Assembly (NCBI RefSeq): GCF_000006765.1
Contig: NC_002516.2
From: Pseudomonas aeruginosa PAO1
GTDB taxonomy: Bacteria > Pseudomonadota > Gammaproteobacteria > Pseudomonadales > Pseudomonadaceae
Reading direction: 5' to 3' (one strand)
Length of the DNA stretch: 64,000 nucleotides
The notes below the pieces were generated by a model. The model worked only from the letters and a program-made list of their open reading frames with translations. It did no database searches and was not told where the DNA came from. The position numbers and the translations under genes are program-made. Shown piece after piece: positions 8,075 through 27,927 of this stretch (its first letter is position 1; every line of letters starts with the position of its first letter).

Positions 8075-8086
8075 ACTTTCCAAACC

Positions 8087-8920: not shown

Positions 8921-9011
8921 GGTGTGACTCCGTTACGGGGGAATGAGTGCACAATACGCAGAAATTTCCCTATCTCAGAGATCGGAATCTCTCGTTTCAT
9001 TGCCTGATTCT

Positions 9012-9977: not shown

Positions 9978-10337
9978 GGCGAGCGTGGAGTCGGTTCGCC
10001 TTCCTGCTCTTGGCCGAGTTCGCTAGGTGAATGTCGGTTGCATTGCCGCTGTTGGCGTCTCGGTGCAGTGACAGTCCTGGTCGGGTGACGCGAGTCCTGC
10101 GCGGGGTGGGCAAGCCGTTACCCGTACCGACTGCACTGTTTGCCTATCCATCCGGTGCCGCCTGCCGTAATGGTCGGGTCCTTGCGTGCTTGGCGATGGA
10201 GTCTCGAAATGATTGGGTTTTACGACTTGTAAGTTGGGAGTTTTCTTACTTCTAACTCAGGATTTTCAATTTTCTATAAATGCCACACTTCCCGCATCTT
10301 CAACTCATCGCTTTCCATCCTGCCATCTGCAAACCCA

Positions 10338-10829
10338 ATGACGTCTCATGCCTTTGCTCGCTGGAATCTTCTGCTTCTGGTCGCTTCCATCTTTGCCGGA
10401 CTTGTCTTTGCTCCGAGTGTCGATCTTTCCGCCTTGCCCACTCCTGAAGCCCGGAAGTGGGTTCTGGCGGAAGTTCCGTCCGTTGCGGTTGATACGACGG
10501 TTGCCGGCAAGTTGGCTGGAATGTCGTGGTGGGGGAGAACCGTGGACGAGGAGCGCGAAGCTGAATCGAAGCGGGTTTCGGTGGGCGTGGATGGAGTGGC
10601 GCTAATCAAGGTCGATTGGCTGCTACGCGGCATTGTCCGCGATGAAGGCGGCATCTTCGCCCTTGTTGCCAAAAGCGCCGAGGGACCTCTGCGGCGTTTT
10701 GCGGCGGGCGCCACTCTGCCTGGCGGCGAGCGTCTGGAGAGCATCACTGAACAAGGAATCCGCTTCTCGTTCTCGCAGGACGGGAACACCCAGGGTTTTG
10801 AAAGGAAACTGTATGCACCCTTGCCATAG
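10338..10829 (+). CDS. GspC/XcpP-like type II secretion protein (TM + HR domain, no PDZ)
   Basis: 163 aa; N-terminal hydrophobic anchor; C-terminal WLLRGIV...FALV...G...AGATLPGGERLESITEQGIRF resembles the T2SS-C/PilP HR fold; overlaps the secretin start. Confidence 0.7.
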   Translation: MTSHAFARWNLLLLVASIFAGLVFAPSVDLSALPTPEARKWVLAEVPSVAVDTTVAGKLAGMSWWGRTVDEEREAESKRVSVGVDGVALIKVDWLLRGIVRDEGGIFALVAKSAEGPLRRFAAGATLPGGERLESITEQGIRFSFSQDGNTQGFERKLYAPLP

Positions 10830-13092
10830 GCCGAGCTTTGCCTTCTTGCGCCACCCGTTGTCCATTGTCGTCTGTCTGGCCCTATTGGCAGGTTGCAGTA
10901 CTTCCCCATTGCAGTTTCCCGAACCATTGCTCGCGAAGTCGGAAAAAGCCAAGGCAACCGAGGGCGTAGCCCTGGTGAGCGACGACGGAAAGAAAGCCCC
11001 GGCATCGTTGGCTGTTCCGAAGACGGAGTTCAGTGGCACGCCCACATCGCCTCGGTCGATCGTAGGCGGTGTAGTCGATCGAATGGACAAGGCGATCCTC
11101 GACGACAAGAAGGCTGACATCAGTCTGAACGTGGAGGACGTACAGCTTGCCGCATTCATCAACGAGGTATTCGGCAACATCCTCGGTTTGCCGTTTGAGA
11201 TCGAAAGCGCTCTGAAGGAAAAGACTGATCGCGTGACCGTTCGTTTGGAACAGCCGCAGACTGCACAGATGGTCTACGAAGTCGCGCGCCAGGTGCTCGT
11301 CAACTACGGCGTGGAGATACTCCACCAAGGCGATATCTATCGCTTCCAGATCAAGCAGGTAGGGCTCAGCCCGGACGAGCCGCCCATTCTCATCAGTGGC
11401 GAAGCACGGCCTAGCGTGCCGATTGCCTATCGGCCGGTATTTCAATTCGTGGCGTTGCACAGCGTCGACCCCAAGGATGTGATTCCCTGGTTGAACAGTG
11501 CCTACGAAAAATCCGGCCTGAGCGTGATGGCCGATGGTGCGCGGAGTGGCTTGATGCTCAAGGGCATGTCTTCCATCGTCAACCAGGCCACCGAAGCCGT
11601 CCGCCTTCTCGATCAACCTTTCATGCGTGGACGTCACAGCCTGCGTATCGACCCGGCCTTCGTCAGTGCTGCCGACATGGCCAGTCAACTCAAGACCGTG
11701 ATTGCGGCGCAAGGCTACAGCGTCGGTATCGGCGAAGCGGTCGGCAGTATAATGCTGGTACCGCTGGAAAGTTCCAATGGCCTCATTGTCTTCGCCAACG
11801 ATGGCCAACTTCTCGACTTGGTGCGCGAGTGGGCGCAGCAGGTCGACAGGGCTCCGATGGCGGTTGCCGCAGGTATCGGCGAGGAGAAGGAAGGACTGTT
11901 CTTCTACGAAGCTCGCAATACCCGTGTCACCGAACTGGCCAAGTCGTTGCGGGCATTGGTATCGGGGTTCGCCGGGGAGGGTGCCTACGGGATCACCTCC
12001 GGACTGCAAAGCAGCGCTTCCAAGCGATCTGGCGGTGGCAGGCGCGCCGGAGACGATGGTGCGGCACCGGCGGTGGCTCCCTTGCTGCAAGCCGCAGGTG
12101 CCGCCGCGTTGGTGGGGGGCGACGGTGCTAACGGTTTGCTCGGTGGCTTGGCGGCCGGTATCAGCGGCAGCGGCACCATAGTGGAGGACGAGAATCGAAA
12201 CGCCATCTTGTTCCGAGGAGCGGCGCGTACCTGGCAGCAGATGCAGGGCTTGCTCCGGGAAATGGACAAGCCGGCCCGCCAGGTATTGATCGAGGTGACG
12301 GTGGCCAGCGTAAGTCTCAGCGACACCCAGGAGTTGGGCGTGGAGTGGGAGATGCTCAACGGCAGCTTCAATAGCGCGACCTCGACCGGAAGCAAGGGCA
12401 GCGCCGGGAAAGGAGGCTTCAACTACGTCATCAACACCGCCGGAGGCAATACCGCAGCCATCCAGGCAATGGCGGACAATCAACGAGTCCGGGTACTCGC
12501 CACTCCCCGTATCTTGGTCAAGAGCGGCGAGCAGGCCAACATCAATGTCGGTCGGGATATTCCTATCCCAACGGCCCAGGTCAATGACGACAGCACCACT
12601 GCTGGAAGCACCAACCTGCGCAATGAAATTGCCTACCGCTCTACCGGCACAATTCTGAATGTCGCCCCCGTAGTCTACTCGGATAGTCGGGTCGATCTTA
12701 CGGTCAGCCAGGAGTTGAGCGACAGTGGCGGTTCTTCCGGCGGCGGTGGCAAGGCCAGTGGTGGAGGAATCAGCGCTCCGGAGATTTCCAGGACGTCGCT
12801 GGAAACATCGCTTACGTTGAAAAGCGGTGGGTCGGTGCTGATGGGGGGGCTGATTCGGGACAACATAACGGACTCCAACGCTGGCGTGCCTCTCCTGAAG
12901 GACATTCCCGGGATCGGTTTCCTCTTCGGACGCCAGAAAGCCGTGAAGACCCGTGAAGAAGTCATCATGTTGATCCAGCCTTACGTGCTGGAAAGTGATG
13001 CCGATGCCAGGGAAGTGACGGAAAAGCTGCACGCCATGCTGAGCAAGACACTGGCCTGCTCCGATAGACCGGGCGCCTGCCGTATGGAATGA
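10813..13092 (+). CDS. xqhB: Type II secretion secretin (GspD family), lipoprotein type (PA1382-like; name xqhB recalled, not verified)
   Basis: 759 aa from ATG 10813 (AGGA RBS); lipobox LLAGC; N0-N3 domains; secretin core LDKPARQVLIEV-like, ATPRILVKSGEQA, GTILNVAP, LKSGGSVLMGGLI, VPLLKDIPGIGFLF. Confidence 0.93.
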   Translation: MHPCHRPSFAFLRHPLSIVVCLALLAGCSTSPLQFPEPLLAKSEKAKATEGVALVSDDGKKAPASLAVPKTEFSGTPTSPRSIVGGVVDRMDKAILDDKKADISLNVEDVQLAAFINEVFGNILGLPFEIESALKEKTDRVTVRLEQPQTAQMVYEVARQVLVNYGVEILHQGDIYRFQIKQVGLSPDEPPILISGEARPSVPIAYRPVFQFVALHSVDPKDVIPWLNSAYEKSGLSVMADGARSGLMLKGMSSIVNQATEAVRLLDQPFMRGRHSLRIDPAFVSAADMASQLKTVIAAQGYSVGIGEAVGSIMLVPLESSNGLIVFANDGQLLDLVREWAQQVDRAPMAVAAGIGEEKEGLFFYEARNTRVTELAKSLRALVSGFAGEGAYGITSGLQSSASKRSGGGRRAGDDGAAPAVAPLLQAAGAAALVGGDGANGLLGGLAAGISGSGTIVEDENRNAILFRGAARTWQQMQGLLREMDKPARQVLIEVTVASVSLSDTQELGVEWEMLNGSFNSATSTGSKGSAGKGGFNYVINTAGGNTAAIQAMADNQRVRVLATPRILVKSGEQANINVGRDIPIPTAQVNDDSTTAGSTNLRNEIAYRSTGTILNVAPVVYSDSRVDLTVSQELSDSGGSSGGGGKASGGGISAPEISRTSLETSLTLKSGGSVLMGGLIRDNITDSNAGVPLLKDIPGIGFLFGRQKAVKTREEVIMLIQPYVLESDADAREVTEKLHAMLSKTLACSDRPGACRME

Positions 13093-13377
13093 GGTCGGTC
13101 GCCTGCAACACTCATCTAGACGACTCTCGTCGTGCTTCCCGATAGGCCTGGAACTTTCCGGGCCGTATCCATCCATAAAAATCTATTGCGAATCTTCTTT
13201 CTAAATGCTCAGAAGTAGCCTTTTACTTCTGGGTGTGACCCGGTTTTTAGAAACGTTTGTTCGTGATCGCTTGGATATTCTTAAGAATTTTCTCTATTTT
13301 ACAGTTTTTATTTTTACCTTCTTCCGTAGGAAAATTCATTTATTAAATGGGAAGAGGTGAAAACGCACTTTTTGCTA

Positions 13378-13406
13378 TTGCTGAGGTGCTTTGGCAATTA
13401 TATAAA
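13378..13406 (+). promoter_or_regulatory. Sigma70-type promoter of the exported protein gene
   Basis: TTGCTG (13378-83), 17-bp spacer, TATAAA (13401-06), preceded by a very AT-rich tract; about 200 nt upstream of ATG 13611. Confidence 0.6.
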
Positions 13407-13610
13407 GCCATCCGTTGGTGCCTGTGTGGCCACTTCATGTAGTGGCTGGGCGTCAATTCGATCGGTGTCACCGGAATGATTGGAAGTATTCATGGTGTCA
13501 GGCCTGTCGATGTGTTGGTTGATTACCGATACATGATCATTAGCGTGTCGTCCAAAGATGGACACTTGACTGGAATGCTCAATATAAACGCTTCAAGGAG
13601 TTATTTTCTC

Positions 13611-15416
13611 ATGCTCAAAAGAACACTACTCAGCGCCGCTGTAGCTTCGGCACTGTTTGCTGGAGTCGCGAACGCTGCCGGAGTGGTTGCTATTGCCACA
13701 AGCCCCACTCTGGAGGCGAACTCGCCTGGTGCAACCGAGCAGTACGGACCAGGACAGGCCAACTATGTCGTCGGCAAGAGTGTGGAAAATGGTGCCAACC
13801 TCGACAGCAAGGCGGCCAACATCACCCTGGCTCAGGAGATTTTCGGCAACAAGTCCGAAGAAACTACCTTTGACCTACCCAGCGTTACCTACACCATCGA
13901 TCCAGTGAAGGCTGGAAATGCCGCTGCGGGCCACACCATCAAGCTGACCCTTGGTCGTACCGTCGTGCGCTTCGCCAAGGCCGTGACCGCCAACCAGATC
14001 AAGATCGGCGCCCTGGCGGCGGGTAGCGGCTTCGTCATCACCAGCGGCACTGGCGCCACTGACAACACGCTTGAGCTGCGCCTCGACCAGGCGGGTGCCG
14101 ACATGATCAAGCAGACCGCGACCGGCGGCAACGTGGTGTTCTTCAACTTCCGCGAGCCGAGCAGCCAGGACAGCCAGCCTGCCAAGGTCACCAACATGCG
14201 CGCTCCGCTTCAGGGCGATGCCACCTTCGTGGCTGGAAGCTGGAATCCGAAAGTGAGCCTGCAGAACGACCCGCTGAACGAATTGCGTTTCCAGGTCACG
14301 GTTTCCGCCCAGTTCGATACCACCACTGGCGCCGATGCCGGCAACCCTGCGAATAACGATTCTGCACCGCCCCTGACCATTTTCACTTCGCTGCCCGCGG
14401 TTTACTGGGACGTTCTCAACACCAACCAGTATGGGCAGAATCGCGTCCTGCATCCGTTGAACCTGAACAATCAGGATCGCTCCTTCGATACCACGGTGTC
14501 CGTCGGTGGCGATAACACCGATTATTATGGTGCCAACTATGCGCGTCTGGGCGCCGTACGGCTCGGCATCAATACGGATGTGCTCAACGAAGCGGGTCGA
14601 ACCGTGTTTGGTTTCGCCGGTGGCGACAAGGTGACCAGCACCCTGTCGGGTAACTTCAACGGGATCAGCGACATCGGCCTGACCACCGGGAACTGCTCCG
14701 CCTTTGCCGCCAATCCGGGGTCTGCCGCCAAGCTCTGGAATTCTGCCGCCATCGAAGGTGTAGTGGATGCGCAGGGCAACGGTACTTTGCCGGTATCGTT
14801 CGACAACTCGAATATCAACCAGACCTACAACGTCTGCGTGAAGGCTTCCGGCACCGTGCCGATGCAGGCGCTGCAACGTTTCGACGTGGGTGATCTGAAG
14901 GTCGACTTCGAGAACGTACGCTATGTCGACCGTACCATTGCAGGCAACCGTCTCGACGAGTTCTGGAAGAACAGTTGCGTCGCCAGTCTGTTCAATCTGC
15001 CTGGCTCCAATGTTTCCGACCAGTTCTTCATTCGTCTGACCAACACCAGCGACGATGGTCGGGACGGCAAGGTGCGCGGGGTACTGTTCGACCAGAACGG
15101 TAAGCGTTATCCGGCGACTGGCAGCACCTACCTGACCGACTCGAGCGGGAAGACCGCCCTGAAAGCGCACGAAACCGGTGTGTACACCGTAACCGAAGTA
15201 GCCAAGGCCTTCGGTATCGACGGCACCAACTGGAACGGTGCCAACGGTCGCGCACGTCTGGTCCTGGAAGGCGAGTTCCCAACCTGCGAGGCGCTCGGCC
15301 TGATCCGCTCTGCCAATGGCACCATCACCAACATGACCTCCACCACCCAAGGCAACTTCAACGAAGATGGCTCGTCCACCTCGGAGAACCACAAGGCTGG
15401 TAACAACCGCAACTAA
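13611..15416 (+). CDS. Sec-exported surface protein, candidate S-layer protein (PA1383-like)
   Basis: 601 aa from ATG 13611 (AAGGAG RBS); signal peptide MLKRTLLSAAVASALFAGVANA; rich in A/G/T/N/V/S; no enzyme motif recognised; sits directly behind a secretin. Confidence 0.85.
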   Translation: MLKRTLLSAAVASALFAGVANAAGVVAIATSPTLEANSPGATEQYGPGQANYVVGKSVENGANLDSKAANITLAQEIFGNKSEETTFDLPSVTYTIDPVKAGNAAAGHTIKLTLGRTVVRFAKAVTANQIKIGALAAGSGFVITSGTGATDNTLELRLDQAGADMIKQTATGGNVVFFNFREPSSQDSQPAKVTNMRAPLQGDATFVAGSWNPKVSLQNDPLNELRFQVTVSAQFDTTTGADAGNPANNDSAPPLTIFTSLPAVYWDVLNTNQYGQNRVLHPLNLNNQDRSFDTTVSVGGDNTDYYGANYARLGAVRLGINTDVLNEAGRTVFGFAGGDKVTSTLSGNFNGISDIGLTTGNCSAFAANPGSAAKLWNSAAIEGVVDAQGNGTLPVSFDNSNINQTYNVCVKASGTVPMQALQRFDVGDLKVDFENVRYVDRTIAGNRLDEFWKNSCVASLFNLPGSNVSDQFFIRLTNTSDDGRDGKVRGVLFDQNGKRYPATGSTYLTDSSGKTALKAHETGVYTVTEVAKAFGIDGTNWNGANGRARLVLEGEFPTCEALGLIRSANGTITNMTSTTQGNFNEDGSSTSENHKAGNNRN

Positions 15417-15439
15417 GTAAGTCGCTTTAGCTGCAGGCC

Positions 15440-15471
15440 AAAGGAGGCGATCTCCTCGATCGCCTCCTTTT
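15440..15471 (+). terminator. Rho-independent terminator
   Basis: Perfect 13-bp stem AAAGGAGGCGATC / GATCGCCTCCTTT, loop TCCTC, ending in TTTT; 23 nt after the stop. Confidence 0.88.
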
Positions 15472-15567
15472 CCACTGGGTAAGTAGAAAGAGAGTGCGTT
15501 ACAGACGGGCTCGATGGGAGTTCTTACCCCTGAAAACCCAGCTCTGTACGTATCAAGGTGAGGCGAG

Positions 15568-16581
15568 ATGCGCGTATTGGTCACAGGAGGTGCAGGATTC
15601 ATTGGCTCTCATGTGTTGGTCGAACTCTTAGGCCAAGGCGCCAAGGTTGTGGTTCTGGATAATCTTGTCAACGGTTCTTCGGAATCTCTAAAGCGAGTGG
15701 AAAGAATAACCGGGCATCCGGTTGGCTTCGTACTGGGAGATGTTAGAGACAGTCTTCTTGTTGAGCGCCTGCTGATCGATGAGAAGGTTGATGCGGTCAT
15801 TCATCTGGCAGGGTTGAAAGCTGTTGGAGAAAGCGTTGATGACCCGCTGGAGTATTACGAGAGCAACGTTCAGGGAACTATTTCGCTGCTACGCGCCATG
15901 CAGAGGGTCGGGGTATTCAAGATTGTCTTCAGTTCTTCCGCAACGATCTATCAGATGCCTGGCACCTTGCCTATATCCGAGAGTTCGAAAGTGGGAGGCG
16001 TGGCCAGTCCCTATGGCCGGACAAAACTGACTGCCGAGCACATGCTCGATGACCTGGCTCGCTCCGATACGCGTTGGTCCATCGCGGTGCTCAGATACTT
16101 CAACCCCATCGGTGCTCATGAAAGCGGCCTCATTGGTGAGGACCCATGCGGTACCCCAAACAATCTTCTGCCCTATATCGCCCAGGTTGCAGTCGGACGT
16201 TTGAGTCGGTTGACGGTACATGGCGGCGACTATCCGACTATCGACGGGACGGGAGTCCGGGACTACATCCATGTTTGCGACCTGGCAGCAGGACATACCA
16301 GGGCGCTCGAATACCTGGGGCAGGGGCACGGCTACCACGTCTGGAATCTTGGGACGGGCACCGGCTATTCGGTCTTGCAGGTCATCGAAGCTTTCGAGCG
16401 AGTCTCTGGCAGGCGCATTCCCTTTACGGTGTCCGGTCGCCGCCCAGGCGATGTGGCTGAGTGCTGGGCGGATGTTTCCAAGGCGGAGCGAGAGTTGGGC
16501 TGGAAGGCGGGGCTGGGCCTCGAATGCATGATTGCGGATGCCTGGCGCTGGCAGGTTTCCAATCCGAGTGGGTATTCATGA
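15568..16581 (+). CDS. galE: UDP-glucose/GlcNAc 4-epimerase
   Basis: 337 aa; TGGAGFIG, HLAGLKAVGES, SSSATIY, YGRTK, LRYFNPIGAH, GTGVRDYIHV. Confidence 0.95.
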   Translation: MRVLVTGGAGFIGSHVLVELLGQGAKVVVLDNLVNGSSESLKRVERITGHPVGFVLGDVRDSLLVERLLIDEKVDAVIHLAGLKAVGESVDDPLEYYESNVQGTISLLRAMQRVGVFKIVFSSSATIYQMPGTLPISESSKVGGVASPYGRTKLTAEHMLDDLARSDTRWSIAVLRYFNPIGAHESGLIGEDPCGTPNNLLPYIAQVAVGRLSRLTVHGGDYPTIDGTGVRDYIHVCDLAAGHTRALEYLGQGHGYHVWNLGTGTGYSVLQVIEAFERVSGRRIPFTVSGRRPGDVAECWADVSKAERELGWKAGLGLECMIADAWRWQVSNPSGYS

Positions 16582-17729
16582 ATCACGCCGCTGTTGTCGA
16601 TGGGTTGCCTTTTAGCAACCTTGCGCTGATCTCCAATCAGGCTTTTTCAATCTACAATTTTCGTGGCGATTTCATTCGAGAGGTCGTACGTCGAGGAGCG
16701 AAGGTCTACGCTTTCGCTCCAGACTATGACGAGGTGACAAGCCGTCAAGTTTCGGAGCTTGGAGCAATTCCGGTTTCCTACAGCTTGAAACGTGCGGGCA
16801 TGAATCCCTTTCAGGAGTTGCACGCACTCCTGAGTCTGATCTGCAAGCTGCGGGCGCTGAAGATCGATGCCGTGTTCAGTTACTTTATAAAGCCCGTTAT
16901 CTACGGTGGTATCGCGGCTTTTTTGACGGGCGTCAGATTACGCTATTCGATGATCGAAGGCGCTGGTTTCATCTATTCGGAAGAAGGCTATACCCATTTT
17001 CTACGGAAGCTGCTTAGGCATGTCGTGACCTGTTCGATCAGGTTGGTCCTTCGGTTCTCGTCTCGTGTATTTCTTCTCAATCAGGATGACTATGACCTGT
17101 TTGTGAGCCCTCGGCTGGCCAAGACGGGACGTGCCTTGATATTGCCGGGTATAGGCGTCGATCTTGATTATTTTGCCGCGAGTTCTCCCGTGTTGCGGCC
17201 TATTACTTTCGTGTTTGTCGCTCGTCTTCTCAAGGAGAAAGGTATCTATGATTTTGTGGAAGCCGCGAGAATCGTTAGAAAACGTAGTCCGCTCGCGCGT
17301 TTTCTGGTCTTGGGAGGCGTCGACAGTAATCCAGGAAAGGTTTCACGGGAGGAAATGAACCAGTGGGTAGCCGAAGGCTTGTTGGAGTGGCCTGGCCATG
17401 TGCATGACATCAAGGCATGGGTGGCCAATACGAGTGTATTCGTGCTGCCCTCCTATTATAGAGAAGGTGTGCCGAGAAGTAGTCAGGAGGCCATGTCCCT
17501 GGGGAAGCCTGTGATAACGACTGACTGGACGGGATGTCGTGAAACGGTACTGGATGGTTTCAATGGATTTCTGGTACCGATCAAGAGTCCGCAGAGTTTA
17601 GCCGCGGCAATGTTGAAGTTCATCGAGTCGCCTTCGCTCATCGCACGTATGGGAGAAGCCAGTAGATCGCTGGCGGAACAGCGTTATGACGTTTTCAGGA
17701 TAAACAATACGATGCTTTCTGCGTTGTAG
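16578..17729 (+). CDS. GT4 glycosyltransferase (CapM/WbpU-like)
   Basis: 383 aa; ATGA overlap with galE; GIGVD, FVARLLKEKGI, EX7E motif REGVPRSSQEAM. Confidence 0.92.
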   Translation: MNHAAVVDGLPFSNLALISNQAFSIYNFRGDFIREVVRRGAKVYAFAPDYDEVTSRQVSELGAIPVSYSLKRAGMNPFQELHALLSLICKLRALKIDAVFSYFIKPVIYGGIAAFLTGVRLRYSMIEGAGFIYSEEGYTHFLRKLLRHVVTCSIRLVLRFSSRVFLLNQDDYDLFVSPRLAKTGRALILPGIGVDLDYFAASSPVLRPITFVFVARLLKEKGIYDFVEAARIVRKRSPLARFLVLGGVDSNPGKVSREEMNQWVAEGLLEWPGHVHDIKAWVANTSVFVLPSYYREGVPRSSQEAMSLGKPVITTDWTGCRETVLDGFNGFLVPIKSPQSLAAAMLKFIESPSLIARMGEASRSLAEQRYDVFRINNTMLSAL

Positions 17730-17748
17730 GGATCTGGCTGTGAGTTGT

Positions 17749-20720: not shown

Positions 20721-20736
20721 AACCGGGAGAACCCTT

Positions 20737-21465
20737 ATGCTGGATATCAGTTTAATCATGAATTTCCATGCGGAAGACGTGCTGGCGCATTGGAGCCTGC
20801 TGGGTTTTCAACGCATGCGTGAATTTGCGTCGCACCATGGGGTTTCCGTGCAGTTGGTGGCGGTGCTCGACCGCGCCTCGCAAACGACTCGGCGAATCGT
20901 CAGGCAGCATCCGATCCTGCGCGAGGGCGACAAGGTCCTTCAGGTCGAGCATGGTGATCTCGGGCTTTCCCGGAACGCCGGGATCGATAGCGCGGATGCG
21001 TCCACGGTGGGGGTGTTGGATGGCGACGACTACTGCTCGGCGAACTGGTTGGTCGAAGCCCTGCAGGTGGTATCCGAGAAGGGCAATGGCGTCGTGGTCC
21101 ATCCCGAGTACACGGTGAGCCATGGAGCCTGCCATTTGCTGGGGCGTTCGGTAGATCAACTGAGCGAAGACTATCCCGTGGAAAGTTGCTTCAAGCATCA
21201 CCCATGGGTTTCCGTTGCCGTAGCCGAGAAAGCCGTATTCCAGGAGCTTCCATACCTGGAGACCCGAGTCGGGAAATCCGGCTTCGGTTATGAAGATTGG
21301 CATTGGAATCTCGAGGTGATTGCGTCCGGTCGGAAGCACACCCTGGCTAGCGGCACCTGCCTGTTCTATCGCCGCAAGGAAGCATCGATGCTGGCCGCCA
21401 TGGGCGCGCTGAACGCAGTGGTTCGCCCCGGACGATTCTTCGATGGACGGTGTTTCGATCACTAG
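20737..21465 (+). CDS. GT2 glycosyltransferase
   Basis: 242 aa; SLIMNFH, VLD, GLSRNAG, VLDGDD, GYEDW. Confidence 0.8.
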   Translation: MLDISLIMNFHAEDVLAHWSLLGFQRMREFASHHGVSVQLVAVLDRASQTTRRIVRQHPILREGDKVLQVEHGDLGLSRNAGIDSADASTVGVLDGDDYCSANWLVEALQVVSEKGNGVVVHPEYTVSHGACHLLGRSVDQLSEDYPVESCFKHHPWVSVAVAEKAVFQELPYLETRVGKSGFGYEDWHWNLEVIASGRKHTLASGTCLFYRRKEASMLAAMGALNAVVRPGRFFDGRCFDH

Positions 21466-21561
21466 CCGGCTTCTCTGGGGCCGGGGAGGCACATGCCTGC
21501 CGCGGCAGCCCCGCATCGATGAGCCGAGCATCCAGCACTTCTACCAAGTGGAACTTTCCTG

Positions 21562-23046
21562 ATGAGCCTGAACGGCAGACTGAAAGCTCGTGCGGCCAGC
21601 TTCGCTCGCACAGCCTATCCACCTATTCTTGGATCGTTGCGGCGGGTGCTCTCCGAGCGCCAACTACAACGCTTCATACTGGTCTGCGACCGTTTGAAGG
21701 GCTGGTTGCTCAAGGAGGCAGTCGTCGTACCGTCACCCTCTCCGATGGCGCTGCCGCCATGGATAGTCGACGAAATGAAGGCGTTGGCCCGGATCGAGCC
21801 TGCCCTGTATCCCTCGGCGGCGAAGCTGCGCGTTTTCACTTCCTGGAAGGCCCCGATAGATAACGGACCGGCGCAACTGTACCGGGGATGTCTGGCGGAC
21901 TTCATCGAATATGCGCCGGATATGGTCTTCCTCGTCCCGCATTTGCAGCGTGGTGGCGCTGACCTGGGAATCCTGCATCATGTGCGGTTATGCGCCGAGA
22001 TGGGCGTGAAGGTGACGGTAGTGGTCACGCGGGATGTGGTGTCTCCCTGGCTCAACCGGCTTCCGGCGGAGGTTCGGGTGGTGGAGTTCGGACGCCTGGG
22101 CAATCTGCTCGGCGAGGAGGACCGGCGCCTGGTACTGCTGCGCCTTTTGCTGCAATGTCCTGCCAGGAGTATCCACATCATCAACTCGCAACTGGCCTGG
22201 GAACTGCTCGAGCGGCATGGCAAGACGTTGACGTTCGAGGGTAAGCGGATTTACGCCAGCGTCTTTTGCGACGACCTGGACGGCAATGCGGTTCGCTGCG
22301 GCTATGCCAGCGAGTTCCTCCCACGGTCCTGGATGCACCTGGCGGGCCTGCTTTCGGATAACCGGACCTTCCTCCAACAGATTCACGAGCGGGACGGCAT
22401 TCCGCCGGAGCTCATGCATGGGCTCTACTTTCCCGCCAGCGACCATGCAGAGGCGATTCCGACCGCAGGCTCGACGATTCTTTGGGCCAGCCGTATCTCG
22501 CCGCAGAAAAGGCCGGACCTGCTCTACGAGATTGCCCTGGCGCTTCCCGAATACCTGTTCGAAGTCCACGGCGAGGTCGATCCTGCTTGCAGGGGAGAAA
22601 CCCAGAGGAAGCTGCGACGCCTGCCGAATGTCAGGCTTCATGGGCGTTACGACTCCTTCCAGGCCCTGGCTCGGCAGGGGCGATATGCGATGTTGCTGTA
22701 TACCTCTCGCTATGACGGCTTGCCGAACATCCTGCTCGAAGCCACTGCTGCAGGGCTGCCCATAGTCGCCCCCGACGTCGGGGGTATCGCTGAGTTCCTG
22801 AATACCGAAACGGGCTATCTGGTCGGCGCTGACGCCGATGCCGGCGAGTTCGCAAGGGCAATCAGGAGTGCGCTGGGCAATCCCGGGGAGACGGCGAGAC
22901 GGGTGAAACGCGCCCGCGAGTTGCTGACGCGACGTCATGGCTGGGCCGCATTCAGGGACGCGGCCAGGAACATACCCGGCTACCTGCCTGGGGGCGTGCG
23001 GCCGGAACAAGAGGTCTCCATGGAAACCGAACCGGTGTCCGGGTGA
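21562..23046 (+). CDS. GT4 glycosyltransferase
   Basis: 494 aa; GGAD, WASRISPQKRP, SRYDGLPNILLEA, PDVGGIAE. Confidence 0.88.
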   Translation: MSLNGRLKARAASFARTAYPPILGSLRRVLSERQLQRFILVCDRLKGWLLKEAVVVPSPSPMALPPWIVDEMKALARIEPALYPSAAKLRVFTSWKAPIDNGPAQLYRGCLADFIEYAPDMVFLVPHLQRGGADLGILHHVRLCAEMGVKVTVVVTRDVVSPWLNRLPAEVRVVEFGRLGNLLGEEDRRLVLLRLLLQCPARSIHIINSQLAWELLERHGKTLTFEGKRIYASVFCDDLDGNAVRCGYASEFLPRSWMHLAGLLSDNRTFLQQIHERDGIPPELMHGLYFPASDHAEAIPTAGSTILWASRISPQKRPDLLYEIALALPEYLFEVHGEVDPACRGETQRKLRRLPNVRLHGRYDSFQALARQGRYAMLLYTSRYDGLPNILLEATAAGLPIVAPDVGGIAEFLNTETGYLVGADADAGEFARAIRSALGNPGETARRVKRARELLTRRHGWAAFRDAARNIPGYLPGGVRPEQEVSMETEPVSG

Positions 23047-24266
23047 AGGGCGTGAGGTCGGCCCATTTTCTGCAGCGCCTGCTATTTTCCCTACCGCCTG
23101 CTTTTCGTTCGTGGCTGGGAGAGAAGGGAAGGCACCTGGTCCATCTTGTCCTCGATATCGGTTCGGCCTCGGCGCTCCGGCAGGATTCCGGGCACGCCAC
23201 TCAGTGGGATCCGCAGAAGCCCCTGCTGAGCGTGGTCATTCCCTGCTTCAACCATGGGAGGTATTTGAGGCGCGCGCTTGATAGCCTGGCTCGGCAGAGC
23301 TTCCAGGACTTCGAGATCATTCTGGTCGACGATGGTTCTGATGACCCTTCGACCCTGGGCCTCCTCGAGGCTCTCCAGGAGCCCGGCATGACGATCCTGC
23401 GCCAGCCCAATCGTGGGCCATCCGCCGCGCGGAATGCCGGTGTGGCGCGGGCGAGGGGGCGTTATATCTGCTGCCTGGATGCGGATGACTGGCTGGCGTC
23501 CACCTATTTGGAAAAGTGCCTGGTCTTGCTGGAGGGAAACTCTGGCGTCCGCCTGGCGTACAGCTGGGTCCAGCTGGTGGGAGAGGAGCATCGGCTGCAT
23601 CGTTCCGCCGGCTTTCATCCCGGACTGTTGCGTTACTTCAATCCGTTCTGTGTCTCCGCGATCTTTCATCGCGATGACTGGCTGGCGGTAGGCGGTTTCG
23701 ACGAAGCCAGGGAGGCACAGTTCGAGGATTGGGATTTCTGGATCGCCCTGGTCGGATGTGGGGTGCGAGGCAGGCTGATCAGGGAACCCCTGTTGTTCTA
23801 TCACCGCCAGGTCGGCTCCAGACTGGAGACCGGCAAACGTCATGCCTTGAGTTCTTACAAGCGCATGCGGACTCGCCATCCTCGCCTCTATCGAGGGAGT
23901 CCATTTCTTCGAGCGCAGCGGCAAGGCTATTACGACTGCTGGGCATATCCTCCTCTGCTCAACCTCTCCCGCGCCGACCAATACAACGCCGTCCTATCCG
24001 ATGCGGTAGCCGTGGTGGCCGACGCGCCGCTCACCGAGGACTGGAACGCATGGCGTCGACAATTCGATGAGCTGCCAGCGTCCTCGACGGTTTTCGTCAT
24101 TGCCGGTGGGTGCCGGAAGCTCCCGGGCTGGCTGCTGGAGAGGGCGAGCGCCATCTACTGGCTGGACGACCTGCTGCACGAGCGGCAATGGTCGGCTTTC
24201 ATCGATAACTTCAGGCGGACCCGCGGAATCTCCAAGGTGTTTTCCGTGGGCAGGACGGCGTGGTGA
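23043..24266 (+). CDS. GT2 glycosyltransferase with C-terminal extension
   Basis: 407 aa, GTG start overlapping the upstream TGA; SVVIPCFN, LVDDGSDD, ARNAG, CLDADD, VGGFDE, FEDWDFW. Confidence 0.9.
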   Translation: MKGVRSAHFLQRLLFSLPPAFRSWLGEKGRHLVHLVLDIGSASALRQDSGHATQWDPQKPLLSVVIPCFNHGRYLRRALDSLARQSFQDFEIILVDDGSDDPSTLGLLEALQEPGMTILRQPNRGPSAARNAGVARARGRYICCLDADDWLASTYLEKCLVLLEGNSGVRLAYSWVQLVGEEHRLHRSAGFHPGLLRYFNPFCVSAIFHRDDWLAVGGFDEAREAQFEDWDFWIALVGCGVRGRLIREPLLFYHRQVGSRLETGKRHALSSYKRMRTRHPRLYRGSPFLRAQRQGYYDCWAYPPLLNLSRADQYNAVLSDAVAVVADAPLTEDWNAWRRQFDELPASSTVFVIAGGCRKLPGWLLERASAIYWLDDLLHERQWSAFIDNFRRTRGISKVFSVGRTAW

Positions 24267-26035
24267 AGGTTCTTTCGCGAGGTCCCGTCGCCGATGCCGT
24301 GCCGTTACTGTCCATCCTCACGGCCTGCGATTGCAGCGTGGAGGAGTTCGAACGAATCGCCGCATTTCTCGAGACGCAGACGCTGAAACGCTGGTGCTGG
24401 ATTCATTGCCCAGGAGTGGACAGTGACTGTCTTCCGGTAGAGGGGATGGCGGTACTGTACTTGCCGCGAGCACCGGCAGCCCTGAGGGCGACTGCTCTGG
24501 AAGAGGCGATCTGGTTCCTGCTGTCCCTACCGACCCTGCCGTGGGTCGAACTCCGCGAAGATGCGCGACGCGGCGATCTCTTCGTCAGTCGCAGGTCGTT
24601 GCCCGAGGGCCGTATTGGCGCAAGGCTGAACGGGCGCAGGCAGCCTTGCTCGTCGGCCATGCTGGCGCCGGGGAGCTTGCCTAAGGCCCCGGGAAAGCGC
24701 TTGTTACTGCTGGCGCCCTGGCTTGAGCCAGGCGGAGCGGATCGTTGCAATCTGGATCTGCTTCGAGCCTTGGCCCGGGAGGGCTGGATGCTGACGGTGG
24801 TCGCCAGCCTGGCGGCCGAGCATCGGTGGCGGGATCGTTTTACCGCGCTCACTGCGGATGTCTGGGTGCTTCCGGACTTTCTGTCTGCCGAGAAAGCTTG
24901 CGGCTTCCTTGCTTATCTGGTGGACAGTCGACAACCCGACCTGATGCTGCTTTCCAACTCTGCATTCGCCTATGACGTGCTGGGGTACGTCCGGACCCGC
25001 TACCCGGGCCTGCCCGTGGTCGACCTCAATCATATGGAGGAGGGCTGGGACGATGGCGGCCATCCGGGTAGAGCCGCTCGATGCACTGCCTTGCTGGACA
25101 GGCACTGGGTCGTATCCGGGCACCTGCGCCACTGGCTGCTCGACCGTGGCGTCGAGGCGAGCAAGGTCGAGGTGTTGCACTGGTTCGCCGATGTGGACTC
25201 GTGGAAACCCGACAGCCTGACGCGCGCGAAGGTCCGGGCGCGCCTGGGAATAGCTCCGCAGTGCGTAGTGATCGCCTATGCGGGGCGGCTCTGCGCGCAG
25301 AAACGACCGGAGCTGTTTGCCGCCAGCCTTGGCGAGTTGGCGCGCCGTGGTAGTGATTTCGTCGCGTTGGTACTGGGCGATGGCGAGCTGGCAGGGGAGC
25401 TGCGGAACGACCTCCGGCGCCATGGCTTGGCCGGGCGGGTACGGATGCTGGGCTGGCAGGACGAGGCTGCGTTGCGCGAGTTGTTCCAGGCCTCCGATAT
25501 ATTTTTCCTGCCATCGGCCGGCGAAGGTATCGCACTGGTTCTCTACGAGGCGATGGCGTGCGGAATGGCCATAGTCGCAGCCGATGTCGGCGGTCACGCA
25601 GAACTGGTCTCTGCCCACTGCGGCTTCCTTGTTCCGCGGCGCGATGCCGAACGAGAGGCCAGGGATTACGCCGCTAGGCTCGAGAGCCTCATGCGCGAAC
25701 CGGAAATGCTTGGGCGGATGGGGCAGAACTCCGCACGCCGCATCCGCGAAGCATTCACCTTGTCTCTTTTCGAGCGGCGTTTGCGGGAGTTGCTGGAACG
25801 CGTGCCGGTTTCGACTCCATGCGGCGTTTGCACGGATAGTCCGGTGCCTGCCCTGGGGGCGGCCAGGCTGTCCATGCAATGGGCTTCCTACCGACTGGCA
25901 AACGGATTGCGCTGCCGGCTGGATATCCAGAAGCACGGCCGTTTTTCAAGATTCCTGGAGCGATGCGCGAAGGGGGTGTTCTTCTTGCGCACATTCGGGG
26001 CGAAGGCGCTTTGGCAAAAGATCAGGAAGCACTGA
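24260..26035 (+). CDS. GT4 glycosyltransferase with degenerate GT2-like N-terminus
   Basis: 591 aa; PWLEPGGAD, YAGRLCAQKRP, LGDG, EX7E GEGIALVLYEAM, ADVGG. Confidence 0.88.
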   Translation: MVKVLSRGPVADAVPLLSILTACDCSVEEFERIAAFLETQTLKRWCWIHCPGVDSDCLPVEGMAVLYLPRAPAALRATALEEAIWFLLSLPTLPWVELREDARRGDLFVSRRSLPEGRIGARLNGRRQPCSSAMLAPGSLPKAPGKRLLLLAPWLEPGGADRCNLDLLRALAREGWMLTVVASLAAEHRWRDRFTALTADVWVLPDFLSAEKACGFLAYLVDSRQPDLMLLSNSAFAYDVLGYVRTRYPGLPVVDLNHMEEGWDDGGHPGRAARCTALLDRHWVVSGHLRHWLLDRGVEASKVEVLHWFADVDSWKPDSLTRAKVRARLGIAPQCVVIAYAGRLCAQKRPELFAASLGELARRGSDFVALVLGDGELAGELRNDLRRHGLAGRVRMLGWQDEAALRELFQASDIFFLPSAGEGIALVLYEAMACGMAIVAADVGGHAELVSAHCGFLVPRRDAEREARDYAARLESLMREPEMLGRMGQNSARRIREAFTLSLFERRLRELLERVPVSTPCGVCTDSPVPALGAARLSMQWASYRLANGLRCRLDIQKHGRFSRFLERCAKGVFFLRTFGAKALWQKIRKH

Positions 26036-26056
26036 ATGAATAGGGAGGTTTCATCC

Positions 26057-27280
26057 ATGACGCCCAGGGTGGTGGTGATTCTCGGCATGCATCGCTCCGG
26101 TACGAGCGTACTTTCCGCCGGACTCGAGGCGCTCGGGGTCGAGTTTGGCGAGAATCTGATCCCACCCAGGCCGGACAACCCCAAGGGATACTGGGAAGAT
26201 GCCCGCCTGGTGGCTTTCAATGACAGAGTCCTGTCCCTGTGTGGGTTTTCGTCGGGCGACGTCGGGTTGTCCAGTCGCCGGGTGCTGGGCGTCGAGCGAT
26301 TCGAAGAGATCGTCCAGCAGGCCATGGCGCTTTTGACTGAGCTACTGGCAGGCAAGGCGCTGCTGGGTATCAAGGATCCGCGTATGCCGCGTCTGATGCC
26401 GATCTGGCAAGCCGCGTTCGATGCATTGGGGCTATGGGTCGACTATGTCATCGCGGCTCGCCATCCTCTTAGCGTCGCGGAGTCTCTTGCTACCCGTGAC
26501 CACTTGAGTCGGGAAAAGAGCCTGATGCTCTGGTACGAACATTCCTGTCGCTCGATGCAGTGGGCGCTCCACAAGGGGGCCGTGGTGGTCGACTACGATC
26601 GTTTGCTGGCTCTGCCGCGACAGGAACTGGGCCGTATTGGCCATCGACTTTCCTTGCCGGTGGACGAGTCGGCTTGCGCCCGCTTCGTCGGTGATGTCCT
26701 GGATGTCGCATTGCGTCACTCATCCCATGATGCGAGCGCGTTGGCTGCCGCAGCGGGAAGCTTTCAGGCGCTGCTCGAGGTGCATGAGGCACTGCAGCAG
26801 CTTGCCGTGGACCGGTTCGACATCGAAGGGTGGAAGGGCCTGGAGCGGGAATTCAGCAGAGCGATGCCGTTGCTGGAGTACGTGGGGGAGCTGGACAGGC
26901 AACTCTGGCAATCGGCTTCGTCCCACAACGAGAGCATGACGCGGTTCAGCGAGCAGGTGGCTGACCTGGCCATGAGCTATACCGCACAGAGGCAACTGAA
27001 CGATGGACTGAGAGATCGCTTGCTTGAGGCCGGTGCTCGGGACGAACAGAACGAACGAGCCATGCGGGAACTTTCTCGGCGATTGTCGGTGTGTCGCGAA
27101 GAGCTTGTTTCCGCTCAGCGCAATCTCGCCGAAACGGACAACTTGCTACGGCGCACGCAGGTAGATCGCGATGATACTCACGCCCGTTTGATGGCTATAT
27201 TGGACAGTCGCTTCTGGCGTTTCACGAAACCCTTGCGAAACCTGTCCCGTCTGTTCGGCAGCGAGACGGGGTGTCCCTGA
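26057..27280 (+). CDS. Sulfotransferase-family domain + coiled coil + C-terminal amphipathic helix (WbdD-like architecture)
   Basis: 407 aa from ATG 26057 (GGAGG RBS; alternative 26036). ILGMHRSGTS, NPKGYWED, IKDPR, RHPLSVAESL; heptad-rich C-terminal third; tail LDSRFWRFTKPLR. Confidence 0.75.
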   Translation: MTPRVVVILGMHRSGTSVLSAGLEALGVEFGENLIPPRPDNPKGYWEDARLVAFNDRVLSLCGFSSGDVGLSSRRVLGVERFEEIVQQAMALLTELLAGKALLGIKDPRMPRLMPIWQAAFDALGLWVDYVIAARHPLSVAESLATRDHLSREKSLMLWYEHSCRSMQWALHKGAVVVDYDRLLALPRQELGRIGHRLSLPVDESACARFVGDVLDVALRHSSHDASALAAAAGSFQALLEVHEALQQLAVDRFDIEGWKGLEREFSRAMPLLEYVGELDRQLWQSASSHNESMTRFSEQVADLAMSYTAQRQLNDGLRDRLLEAGARDEQNERAMRELSRRLSVCREELVSAQRNLAETDNLLRRTQVDRDDTHARLMAILDSRFWRFTKPLRNLSRLFGSETGCP

Positions 27281-27336
27281 GCGCAAGCTGGAAGTGGCGC
27301 TGCGGACGGTTCGTGCCTCCAGGCCCAATCATCTTG

Positions 27337-27927
27337 TCAGGCTGGCTGGTTCGTCTCCAGGTAGGAAATGATTCGCTTCACCGCCAGGTCGGGGTCTTCT
27401 GAAAGTGTATCGATCGTTATGTTCGGCTGTGCGGGCGTTTCGTAGATCGAGTCGATCCCGGTGAAGTTTTCGATCTTGCCCGAGCGTGCTTTCCTGTACA
27501 GGCCTTTGGGATCTCTTCTCTCGCATTCCGAGAGCGGCGTATCGACAAAGACCTCGATGAAATGCTCGATGCCGATAAGTTCCCGAGAGAGGCGCCTGTC
27601 TCGCGAAAATGGCGAGATGGTTGCCACGATCACGATAAGGCCGGCTTCCAGCAGGATCTTTGCCACTTCCGCGATTCTTCGAATGTTCTCGGTGCGATCT
27701 TCGTCGCTGTAGCCAAGGTTTCGGCACAGGCCAAGGCGGAGATCGTCGCCGTCCAGGAGAAACGTATGTTTCTTCTGTTCGAAAAGCGCTAGTTCCAGGG
27801 CACTCGCAATAGTGGATTTTCCAGCGCCACTCAACCCGGTCAGCCAGATGACCGCTGGGCGTTGGCGCTTGAGCGCACTGCGTGTCTCGTTATCGATCGA
27901 TCGTTTTCCATGTTCACGAGGATTCAT
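27337..27927 (-). CDS. cysC: Adenylyl-sulfate (APS) kinase
   Basis: 196 aa; [47 protein letters not shown]. Confidence 0.96.

Follow-up and report, generated by a model that had tools for sequence, protein, structure and literature searches.

In Pseudoalteromonas tunicata D2, the S-layer protein Slr4 (Pfam PF19526; Ali et al., 2020; PMC7821379) has been verified by electron microscopy and gene knockout; its gene adjoins a type II secretion system (T2SS) operon, and the protein is also described as a major component of the biofilm matrix. In Aeromonas, where the S-layer is tethered by lipopolysaccharide (LPS), the locus runs wzm, spsE-L..., vapA, wzt and glycosyltransferases (GTs) in A. salmonicida and SpsL, SpsM, Orf2, SpsD, VapA in A. 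hydrophila AH-1 (PMC4483657, PMC4413209). A third point of reference lies in Pseudomonas aeruginosa itself, where the orphan GspC/GspD pair XphA/XqhA combines with the Xcp machinery into a working hybrid (Michel et al., 2007, as recounted in PMC6567927).

We compared with these systems a 64-kb window of P. aeruginosa PAO1 (~1,488,001-1,552,000, with exact matches of two published PA1383 primers at window positions 13782 and 13888), in which PA1381-PA1393 occupy positions 10338-27927 (Table 1). The 13 open reading frames (ORFs) are uninterrupted and densely packed, with stop/start overlaps of 4-17 nt at five gene junctions. GC content is 0.50-0.64 in the island (0.505 over 13001-14000) against 0.65-0.71 in the flanks, and GC3 is 0.57-0.74 against 0.82-0.89; aceK, an SDR gene and an AraC regulator lie upstream, and a hybrid sensor kinase lies downstream. 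The ORFs, the Pfam/NCBIfam domains and the GC contrast bear out what a first-pass annotation of this DNA had described, 13 unbroken low-GC genes in the order of Table 1. Nine of the proteins are on record with identical starts, and exact-sequence copies of eight of these are each found on at least 1000 contigs (PA1392, on 230); the named members of those protein clusters are nearly all P. aeruginosa and mainly full length, and the island is conserved across the species.

Table 1. Features of the PA1381-PA1393 island (window coordinates)
Feature	Coordinates	Strand	Description
PA1381	10338..10829	+	163 aa; GspC-like; N-terminal TM helix and HR (PilP-like) beta domain
PA1382	10813..13092	+	T2SS-type liposecretin, 759 aa; lipobox LLAGC, read from translation
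Intergenic region	13093..13610	+	518 bp, AT-rich; terminator-like hairpin, then presumed PA1383 promoter/leader
PA1383	13611..15416	+	601 aa; Sec-exported; candidate S-layer subunit
PA1384 galE	15568..16581	+	UDP-hexose 4-epimerase; Pfam Epimerase 3.8e-52
PA1385	16578..17729	+	GT4; Pfam Glycos_transf_1 3e-29
PA1386	17740..19017	+	Wzt ATPase with C-terminal carbohydrate-binding domain; Pfam ABC_tran and Wzt_C 1.2e-19
PA1387	19014..20720	+	N-terminal GT-A/GT8-like (DSD motif) and C-terminal sulfotransferase (PSB loop PRSGTS)
PA1388	20692..21465	+	Small GT2-like; Pfam Glycos_transf_2 8.4e-6 (weak)
PA1389	21562..23046	+	GT4; Pfam Glyco_trans_1_4 9e-16
PA1390	23043..24266	+	GT2; Pfam Glycos_transf_2 6e-31
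PA1391	24260..26035	+	GT4 with N-terminal extension; Pfam Glycos_transf_1 1.3e-28
PA1392	26036..27280	+	Sulfotransferase-like N-terminal domain (PSB loop GMHRSGTS) and long helical C-terminus
PA1393 cysC	27337..27927	-	APS kinase, giving the sulfate donor PAPS; convergent with operon; Pfam APS_kinase 6e-64

The first two genes encode a secretion pair. PA1381, which has neither a PDZ domain nor a coiled coil, matches Pfam T2SSC weakly (E = 0.012, model positions 4-125 of 141), as do four of six orthologues (best 3.4e-5), and the beta domain of its AF2 model resembles PilP and Legionella LspC (Foldseek probability 1.0, TMt ≤0.64). Its gene lies directly 5' of the secretin gene, a place taken in full T2SS loci by a gene for a protein of 161-172 residues and in A. 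hydrophila by that for the 166-residue Orf2, immediately before SpsD. PA1382 matches Pfam Secretin (3.3e-43), Secretin_N and, under the equivalog cut-off, NCBIfam GspD (1.6e-75). Its identity to the secretins encoded in the full loci is 59-69%, and exact copies of the 759-residue product lie on at least 1000 contigs. Like XphA/XqhA, PA1381/PA1382 are a GspC-like protein and a secretin encoded remote from other gsp genes; unlike that pair, they adjoin an obvious candidate substrate gene, PA1382 is a putative lipoprotein, and cooperation with Xcp or Hxc is so far a proposal.

Fuller versions of the locus are found in related bacteria. Sister Pseudomonas species have, at the O-antigen site, the order wzm, gspE-F-G-H-I-J-K-L-M-C-D, surface protein, galE (always immediately after the surface-protein gene in Pseudomonas loci), GT4, wzt and then glycosyl- and sulfotransferases. 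A complete gspE-M-C-D set stands 5' of the PA1383 homologue in four Pseudomonas species, one gammaproteobacterial MAG and metagenome contigs, and a divergent full T2SS adjoins the homologue in Alteromonadaceae. The island of P. jinjuensis has wzm at its 5' end and rpsA-ihfB-...-wbpL-wbpM, marking the O-antigen site, at its 3' end, with cysC outside the island and rpsA directly after the last sulfotransferase gene. In the PAO1 window, tblastn detected neither a wzm permease nor gspE-M (all E > 0.1), an absence that the first-pass annotation had overlooked. Judged by these gene orders, the PAO1 island is a relocated copy of the fuller locus, truncated by the loss of wzm and nine T2SS genes, and its earlier description as intact holds for every ORF but not for the system. 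The Aeromonas architecture that the first-pass annotation had cited agrees with the published loci (PMC4483657, PMC4413209). In a comparison of gene order, sister Pseudomonas species match it gene by gene: wzm, a dedicated T2SS, a 160- to 170-residue protein, secretin, surface protein, wzt and GTs within an O-antigen cluster. PAO1 differs in having neither wzm nor the greater part of the T2SS, and its island lies away from the O-antigen site. The Aeromonas O-antigens described in those papers are unsulfated. Linkage of secretin, exported protein and glycan/sulfotransferase genes, on which the original proposal had staked itself, is kept across genera.

PA1383 (mature mass ~61 kDa; acidic; rich in Gly, Ala, Thr and Asn) has no sequence match in Pfam, NCBIfam or the PDB, nor to the Pfam Slr4 model specifically. 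Its family profile finds 202 representatives, and Pfam Slr4 matches 5 of 96 family members, one of them (P0066) over the gathering cut-off. In hhalign, PA1383-family alignments reached a probability of 97.1% against 22 Slr4-family sequences (E = 6.7e-11, 359 columns), and a second run gave 97.3% (E = 2.5e-11), with PA1383 405-561 aligned to Slr4 398-553, that is, chiefly the C-terminal domain; with the A1 profile alone, just the signal peptide was aligned. These profile alignments make it highly probable that the PA1383 family is a remote homologue of Slr4. The two proteins also share a Sec signal peptide, a mass of ~55-60 kDa and an acidic, Ala/Thr/Gly-rich composition, both genes lie directly 3' of the secretin gene closing a dedicated gsp operon (for PA1383, in the full loci), and a glycan cluster with two sulfotransferases adjoins the slr4 locus. 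They differ in that the N-terminal two-thirds of PA1383 connect to Slr4 via intermediate sequences only, that PAO1 has gspC/gspD alone, that its glycan pathway is of Wzm/Wzt type with Sulfotransfer_3 whereas that of slr4 is of Wzx type with Sulfotransfer_2, and that Slr4 is a verified S-layer protein whereas PA1383 is a candidate. The AF2 model, of moderate confidence (pLDDT 68), predicts an all-beta chain of Ig-like domains rather than an enzyme, in favour of the S-layer reading; Foldseek returns generic Ig-like adhesin and pilin folds at low TM-scores. The cysteines are conserved in the family and one locus (L015) has a DsbA-like neighbour, consistent with periplasmic folding preceding T2SS export. 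Overall, the S-layer interpretation has substantial, though partial, support, including homology to a proven S-layer protein, while the PAO1 system is incomplete.

The Escherichia coli O9a polysaccharide offers a model for the glycan genes, with the kinase/methyltransferase WbdD and its coiled-coil ruler, terminal capping and a Wzt that has a carbohydrate-binding domain. PAO1 likewise has a Wzt with Wzt_C (best PDB match of PA1386, 8dku/7k2t "ABC transporter" chains, 1.7e-75, presumably those of the O-antigen transporter Wzm-Wzt from Aquifex aeolicus), several GT4/GT2 enzymes and, in PA1392, a catalytic domain followed by a long helical C-terminus, coiled-coil-like and amphipathic at its end as judged by eye from the translation. 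PA1392 is on this analogy a candidate chain terminator and length ruler, a role assigned by inspection. Unlike in O9a, wzm is missing and the putative cap would be sulfate; we know of no described O-polysaccharide chain terminator of that kind. The sulfotransferase assignments differ in strength: PA1387 matches Pfam Sulfotransfer_3 at 3.3e-15 (its motifs were read from the translation, and its NCBIfam GT8-type match is weak, 0.008), and PA1392 matches Sulfotransfer_3 weakly (6.9e-4), with an unmarked match in its P. jinjuensis orthologue. The start of PA1388 is uncertain (TTG 20692 or ATG 20737), and sister species have two tandem copies of this gene (L002-L005, L018).

Taken by analogy with these systems, a hybrid arrangement, in which PA1381/PA1382 dock on Xcp and PA1383 is exported onto a sulfated O-polysaccharide, has in our estimate a probability of roughly 55%. 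PA1383 would cross the inner membrane via Sec, fold in the periplasm with disulfides and leave through PA1382, with PA1381/PA1382 serving, as XphA/XqhA do, as a substrate-specific outer module on the inner-membrane platform and pseudopilus of Xcp (or Hxc). PA1384-PA1391 would make a polymer on undecaprenyl phosphate, to be sulfated by PA1387 and PA1392 with PAPS from CysC; the PA1392 coiled coil may fix chain length through capping, the capped chain would be recognised by the Wzt carbohydrate-binding domain and exported with a Wzm encoded elsewhere, and the LPS-ligated glycan would hold PA1383 at the cell surface. Since wzm and gspE-M are absent from the window, both export steps rely on unproven help from other loci. 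Some close relatives have lost C and D too and kept the protein and glycan genes, so a dedicated secretin may be dispensable, or a PA1383-type protein need not reach the surface.

A strong AAGGAG ribosome-binding site precedes PA1383, and a terminator-like site lies at 13229-13243, 3' of the secretin gene. MvaT/MvaU and NrdR are reported to repress PA1383 (PMC8850804, PMC4409342); since MvaT/MvaU ordinarily keep the locus repressed, a coat, if there is one, would form only under certain conditions. The protein is translated and detected by mass spectrometry in PAO1, is reported to be under purifying selection and is present in a surface-shaving proteome. The placement of the window in PAO1 is also borne out by olg2, whose published coordinates fall on the antisense ORF 13875-15602. 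The exported protein had looked abundant at first reading; published expression in PAO1 cultures is only about that of the median gene, which is far below the need of a closed S-layer and counts against the hybrid reading.

This modest expression would suit two functionally separate neighbouring modules descended from an O-antigen region, PA1383 being a non-lattice T2SS-secreted adhesin or biofilm-matrix protein and PA1384-PA1393 making or modifying an LPS or capsular glycan of their own. The adhesin/pilin-like Foldseek matches, the biofilm-matrix role of Slr4 itself and the P. jinjuensis glycan genes, which sit at the canonical O-antigen site and resemble that organism's own O-polysaccharide pathway, point the same way. 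We nonetheless consider such a separation unlikely, because the block of surface protein, galE, GT4, wzt and sulfotransferase holds together despite T2SS loss and relocation, the independent slr4 locus likewise has sulfotransferases, and the PA1387-like gene, which accompanies the surface-protein gene more widely than any other partner (adjacent in L013), lies inside the T2SS operon of L015, from which the other glycan genes are absent.

Less probable again is a silenced evolutionary remnant, in which neither glycan nor protein is exported to the surface for want of wzm and gspE-M and the genes are kept by weak selection or moonlighting (PAPS/UDP-galactose supply). Besides the missing genes and the reported repression, erosion is suggested by repeated independent T2SS loss in relatives, and an outbreak isolate has lost the PA1381-PA1393 region in a 131-kb deletion. 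Against decay stand the 13 intact ORFs and their many exact, mostly full-length copies, the purifying selection and translation of PA1383, the greater phage sensitivity of a PA1382 transposon mutant and the retention of exactly the GspC and GspD pair type that, in the account given in PMC6567927, is able to work with Xcp. That the glycan is instead put onto PA1383 itself, as in Gram-positive S-layer glycan pathways with Wzm/Wzt and capped chains, is improbable: in its favour, the gene for the surface protein is coupled to a glycan pathway of the ABC-transporter type, and two tandem PA1383 paralogues in Beggiatoa adjoin a Maf/MptE-like protein, a kind serving protein glycosylation, but the islands of PAO1 and sister species contain no oligosaccharyltransferase (Wzy_C-type) gene, the Aeromonas layer is LPS-tethered, and the position of the P. 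jinjuensis island beside wbpL and wbpM favours an LPS product.

The system had been put forward as undescribed, and this stands in part: its kind, a T2SS-exported S-layer of Slr4/Aeromonas type tied to an O-polysaccharide locus, is known, but its occurrence in P. aeruginosa was not found in the literature searched. To our knowledge, decades of electron microscopy and LPS chemistry on P. aeruginosa have yielded no report of an S-layer or a sulfated O-polysaccharide, which counts against the hybrid reading. If that reading is true, P. aeruginosa, for all the study devoted to it, may have a surface coat that is silent and has never been observed.

The island comprises PA1381-PA1393, in a window that corresponds to ~1,488,001-1,552,000 of PAO1, and inspection of its ORFs found all 13 genes of the first-pass annotation present, uninterrupted and in the order proposed. 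The domain assignments made there from the DNA were also borne out: after the GspC-like gene come the secretin, the exported protein, GalE, a GT4 glycosyltransferase, Wzt with its Wzt_C domain, a GT-A/GT8-like N-terminal part joined to a sulfotransferase, GT2, GT4, GT2 and GT4 enzymes, a weak sulfotransferase match with a helical tail, and a convergent APS kinase. Stop/start overlaps of 4-17 nt are seen at five island junctions, and the island is indeed of low GC (0.50-0.64 versus 0.65-0.71 in the flanks), with GC3 values of 0.57-0.74 inside it and 0.82-0.89 outside. Its neighbors are aceK, an SDR gene and an AraC regulator at one end and a hybrid sensor kinase at the other; we found no tRNA in the 64-kb window, no Rfam families across the island and its borders, and no sigma-70 consensus promoter at the island or its borders. 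Exact predicted starts are on record for nine island products, eight of which have their exact sequences on at least 1000 contigs (PA1392 on 230); where members of their clusters are named, nearly all come from P. aeruginosa and most are full length. The upstream regulator, PA1380, is reported to activate the cupB fimbrial genes (2026 ChIP-seq study), and transcription, translation and purifying selection have been reported for the antisense gene olg2 (PMC8850804).

Positions of features in the window and in comparison loci (L-handles)
Feature	Sequence	Position	Strand	Remark
Second low-GC stretch	window	1-2000		GC 0.46-0.55; apart from the island
PA1380, AraC-type regulator	window	8943-9977	+	directly upstream of the island
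Matches to two published PA1383 primers	window	13782 and 13888		both exact
olg2	window	13875-15602	-	575-aa antisense ORF overlapping nearly all of PA1383 and the start of galE; corresponds to published PAO1 coordinates 1501875-1503602
C-terminal module of PA1383	window	~14930-15335		PA1383 residues ~440-575
C-terminal tail of PA1383	window	15339-15413		last 25 residues
PA1388	window	20692-21465		single in PAO1, M. resinovorans/BN415, L020 and L021
cysC	window	27337-27927	-	attached to the island in P. aeruginosa
PA1388 tandem duplicate	L002-L005	~17100-18600		P. schmalbachii, P. citronellolis, P. delhiensis, P. jinjuensis
Two tandem PA1383-family paralogues	L014 (Beggiatoa leptomitoformis)	6073-11428		34% identical to each other
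Polysaccharide cluster	L022 (P. tunicata D2)	13037-21740		after the slr4 locus
P0052, S8 protease	L023	2490-6905		1471 aa

The strongest evidence on what kind of locus this is comes from synteny. A complete type II secretion system (T2SS) precedes the PA1383 homologue in P. schmalbachii, P. citronellolis, P. delhiensis and P. jinjuensis, in a gammaproteobacterial MAG, and on a metagenome contig (L020) encoding a surface protein with 76% identity to PA1383. The order in these loci is gspE-F-G-H-I-J-K-L-M, a PA1381-like gene of 161-172 aa, the secretin and the PA1383 homologue, followed in the Pseudomonas and metagenome-contig loci by galE-GT4-wzt-PA1387-PA1388-GT4-GT2-GT4-sulfotransferase; downstream of its homologue, the MAG showed just a sulfotransferase-like match and a more distal wzt. 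The linkage of secretin, surface protein and glycan genes, central to the original proposal, is thus kept in four Pseudomonas species and the metagenome contig. Among more distant homologues, a divergent complete T2SS operon abuts the PA1383 homologue in Alteromonadaceae, and a distant metagenomic locus (L015) carries a secretin, the homologue, a DsbA-like gene, a PA1387-like sulfotransferase and gspE onward. The Beggiatoa paralogues adjoin a Maf/MptE-like protein, a type employed in flagellin glycosylation, and have no T2SS in their vicinity.

In P. jinjuensis, the island begins with wzm, directly after cmk, and ends before rpsA-ihfB-lapA-lapB-epimerase-wbpL-wbpM, that is, at the canonical O-antigen site. 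The O-antigen wzm and wzt of Aeromonas have vapA and the T2SS genes for the S-layer inserted between them (PMC4483657); a 166-aa Orf2 lies before SpsD, and LPS serves as the tether of the layer (PMC4413209). The P. jinjuensis locus has this Aeromonas-type order (wzm, dedicated T2SS, surface protein, wzt and glycosyltransferases, within the O-antigen cluster), whereas the PAO1 island departs from it, being without wzm and gspE-M and lying between the AraC regulator and the sensor kinase.

PA1383 itself is preceded by an AT-rich spacer of 518 bp and a strong AAGGAG ribosome-binding site, and its product carries a Sec signal peptide; the mature protein is ~61 kDa, with a pI of 5.0 and four cysteines, and is rich in Gly, Ala, Thr and Asn. 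It has no sequence match in Pfam, NCBIfam or the PDB. AlphaFold2 predicts an all-beta chain of Ig-like sandwiches (pLDDT 68), for which Foldseek with the full model returned generic Ig-like domains of adhesins, pilins and S-layer proteins at TM scores of about 0.1-0.2; as modelled, an enzyme fold is excluded, and little else is. Close homologues (53-86% identity) occur in species of the P. aeruginosa group, namely P. citronellolis, P. nitroreducens, P. delhiensis, P. schmalbachii, P. jinjuensis and M. resinovorans, and a profile search of 1.84 billion representatives gave 202 relatives, 36 of them below 1e-30; the source names of the distant members are all "hypothetical" and give no function.

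A known S-layer family lies within reach of these sequences. Slr4, the S-layer protein of Pseudoalteromonas tunicata D2, has been verified by electron microscopy and knockout (PMC7821379), and its gene stands directly after a dedicated T2SS operon (PMC7821379, PMC11094555). PA1383 does not match the Pfam Slr4 model (PF19526) even at E ≤ 10, and is therefore a remote relative of Slr4, not a member by the Pfam criterion; five of 96 PA1383-family representatives match the model at E ≤ 0.01 (best 7.3e-8), one of them, P0066, above the gathering score (26.6 bits versus a cut-off of 25). Starting from the Slr4 sequence in the supplement of PMC7821379, we collected 35 family members and aligned 22 (alignment A5). 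Comparison by hhalign of the 96-member PA1383-family alignment (A4) with A5 gave a probability of 97.1% and an E value of 6.7e-11 over 359 columns, and a PA1383-family alignment with PA1383 as its first row (A3) gave 97.3% and 2.5e-11, placing PA1383 405-561 onto Slr4 398-553. Profile-profile comparison was needed for this link, because single-sequence PA1383/Slr4 comparison was marginal by hhalign (E values of 0.002 and 0.025) and empty by phmmer; with another PA1383-family profile (A1), the signal peptide alone aligned to the Slr4 family. The other T2SS-linked S-layer protein described in recent years, NpdA of Paracidovorax/Delftia (PMC10765051), whose sequence was taken from the supplement of that paper and compared with the PA1383-family profile, is rejected as a relative: hhalign aligned the signal peptide alone, at a probability of 0.5%.

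The best-conserved part of the PA1383 family is a C-terminal module of ~120 residues with the pattern …N-x-P…D-x-x-F-I-R-x-T-N-T-S…G-R-A-R-L…G-L-I-R…N-G-T-L-T-N-M-S. This module of the PA1383/Slr4 superfamily is also found in several other large proteins and in four tandem copies in the protease P0052, the genomic context of which is uninformative; it may be a general cell-surface, perhaps glycan, anchoring module. Beyond it, the tail of PA1383 (…QGNFNED-GSSTSENHKAGNNRN) is predicted to be disordered yet is conserved, with GNNRN at the very end in every Pseudomonas homologue, and could be a processing or sorting signal. Cysteines are invariant or nearly so across the aligned family members and, together with the DsbA-like neighbor at the one locus L015, fit periplasmic folding before T2SS export.

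The first-pass annotation had called the island intact, which holds for each ORF and fails for the system. With P. jinjuensis queries, tblastn found no wzm or gspE-M in the 64-kb window (all E > 0.1), nor is there an ABC2_membrane (Wzm) homologue in it (best tblastn E 0.14); only C and D of the T2SS queries match, at 46% and 59% identity, and the PAO1 island is not at the cmk/rpsA site. C and D are missing as well, with the protein and glycan block kept, in M. resinovorans (L001), Pseudomonas sp. BN415 (L019) and a further contig (L021) whose protein is 80% identical to PA1383. The closest islands thus form a series of three states, complete (L020), C and D only (P. aeruginosa) and none (L001, L019 and L021), and these gene contents imply that the secretion genes were repeatedly lost while the protein and glycan block persisted.

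What remains of the secretion system in PAO1 would be an orphan pair. PA1381 has an N-terminal TM helix, and four of six orthologues, at best with 3.4e-5, give weak T2SSC matches; its predicted beta domain superposes on PilP and on Legionella LspC, the GspC HR fold. PA1382, like its orthologues, has a lipobox (LLAGC) and is therefore probably a self-piloting liposecretin. According to the review PMC6567927, XphA/XqhA is an orphan GspC/GspD pair of P. aeruginosa that works with the Xcp machinery; PA1381/PA1382 is likewise a GspC-type protein plus a secretin with no gspE-M in 64 kb, and by analogy XphA/XqhA would be its obvious model.

The same truncation affects the glycan pathway. PA1386 matches ABC_tran (1.6e-21) and Wzt_C (1.2e-19) in Pfam, and its best PDB match is 8dku (1.7e-75, residues 13-377). 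With known Wzt proteins that have a carbohydrate-binding domain, the polymer is completed in the cytoplasm and recognized via a terminal cap, and the Wzt ATPase needs a Wzm permease; glycan export from this island would need Wzm from elsewhere, for example the common-antigen transporter. Sulfotransferase PSB loops are found in PA1387 (PRSGTS) and PA1392 (HRSGTS), neither of which has a sequence relative that we could find in the PDB. The Pfam sulfotransferase match of PA1392 is weak (6.9e-4), that of an orthologue not being marked so, and its long, helical C-terminus, judged by eye from the sequence to be coiled-coil-like, resembles the WbdD-type terminator/ruler architecture. CysC would supply PAPS for both enzymes; in P. 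jinjuensis, rpsA stands directly after the last sulfotransferase gene, and cysC is either a lineage-specific addition or located elsewhere in that species.

The polysaccharide cluster that follows slr4 in P. tunicata also holds sulfotransferase genes (two Sulfotransfer_2, with a Wzx flippase, GT4/GT2 enzymes and WecG), which, unlike those of the PAO1 island, belong to a different family and to a Wzx-type pathway. The pairing of an Slr4-type protein with a sulfated glycan therefore recurs independently. Sulfated-glycan genes thus accompany an Slr4-class S-layer protein in pathways of two unrelated types; the word "sulfotransferase" does not occur in the main text of PMC7821379.

Published PAO1 data show PA1383 to be transcribed, translated and detected by mass spectrometry (PMC8850804), at an expression level only about the median, whereas an Slr4-type protein forming a paracrystalline lattice on the cell would be expected among the most abundant proteins; purifying selection on PA1383 and its repression by MvaT/MvaU and NrdR have been reported (PMC8850804, PMC4409342). 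The protein was comparatively quantified, in the extracellular group, in surface-protein extracts of multidrug-resistant CF isolates. Transposon insertion in PA1382 increases sensitivity to two phages, and one outbreak isolate has lost the region in a 131-kb deletion. In the literature searched, we found no paper linking an S-layer to the island or to the sister Pseudomonas species.

The central proposal, an undescribed P. aeruginosa surface-layer system with a sulfated glycan, accordingly divides in two. We are confident, at a probability of roughly 85%, in the kind and origin of the locus: a T2SS-exported surface-layer protein functionally tied to an ABC-type glycan that is sulfated. Actual assembly of such a layer by P. 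aeruginosa is unlikely: each export machine lacks half of its parts, expression is low, and no layer is known to have been observed. The locus is of a known kind, the Slr4/Aeromonas-type T2SS-dependent S-layer loci, and is distinguished in PAO1 by its orphan pair of GspC-like protein and liposecretin, by a Wzt unaccompanied by Wzm, and by two sulfotransferases, one of which is apparently fused to a coiled coil. A fuller and rather improbable reading is that the P. aeruginosa/citronellolis/nitroreducens group might conditionally assemble an Slr4-type S-layer tethered to a third, sulfated, ABC-exported O-polysaccharide of LPS, in P. aeruginosa via a PA1381/PA1382-Xcp hybrid T2SS and cryptic under MvaT/MvaU, with sulfate serving both as the cap read by Wzt and as the ligand of the C-terminal module.

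Few bacteria have been studied as intensively as P. aeruginosa, and to our knowledge its textbook envelope includes neither an S-layer nor a sulfated O-polysaccharide. If functional under some condition, the island would provide a new outer surface, bearing on phage adsorption, complement and antibody access, the biofilm matrix and LPS serology, and a role for PA1381/PA1382 and PA1383. Even if it is silent in P. aeruginosa, the comparison ties the Slr4 family to a much wider set of about 200 clusters (from Pseudomonas, Alteromonadaceae, Beggiatoa and metagenomes), shows the Aeromonas-style arrangement, with S-layer and T2SS genes between wzm and wzt, in a further genus, and points to sulfated glycans as a recurrent partner of the Slr4-class S-layer; sister species that have the complete locus are at hand as non-clinical models for this reading.
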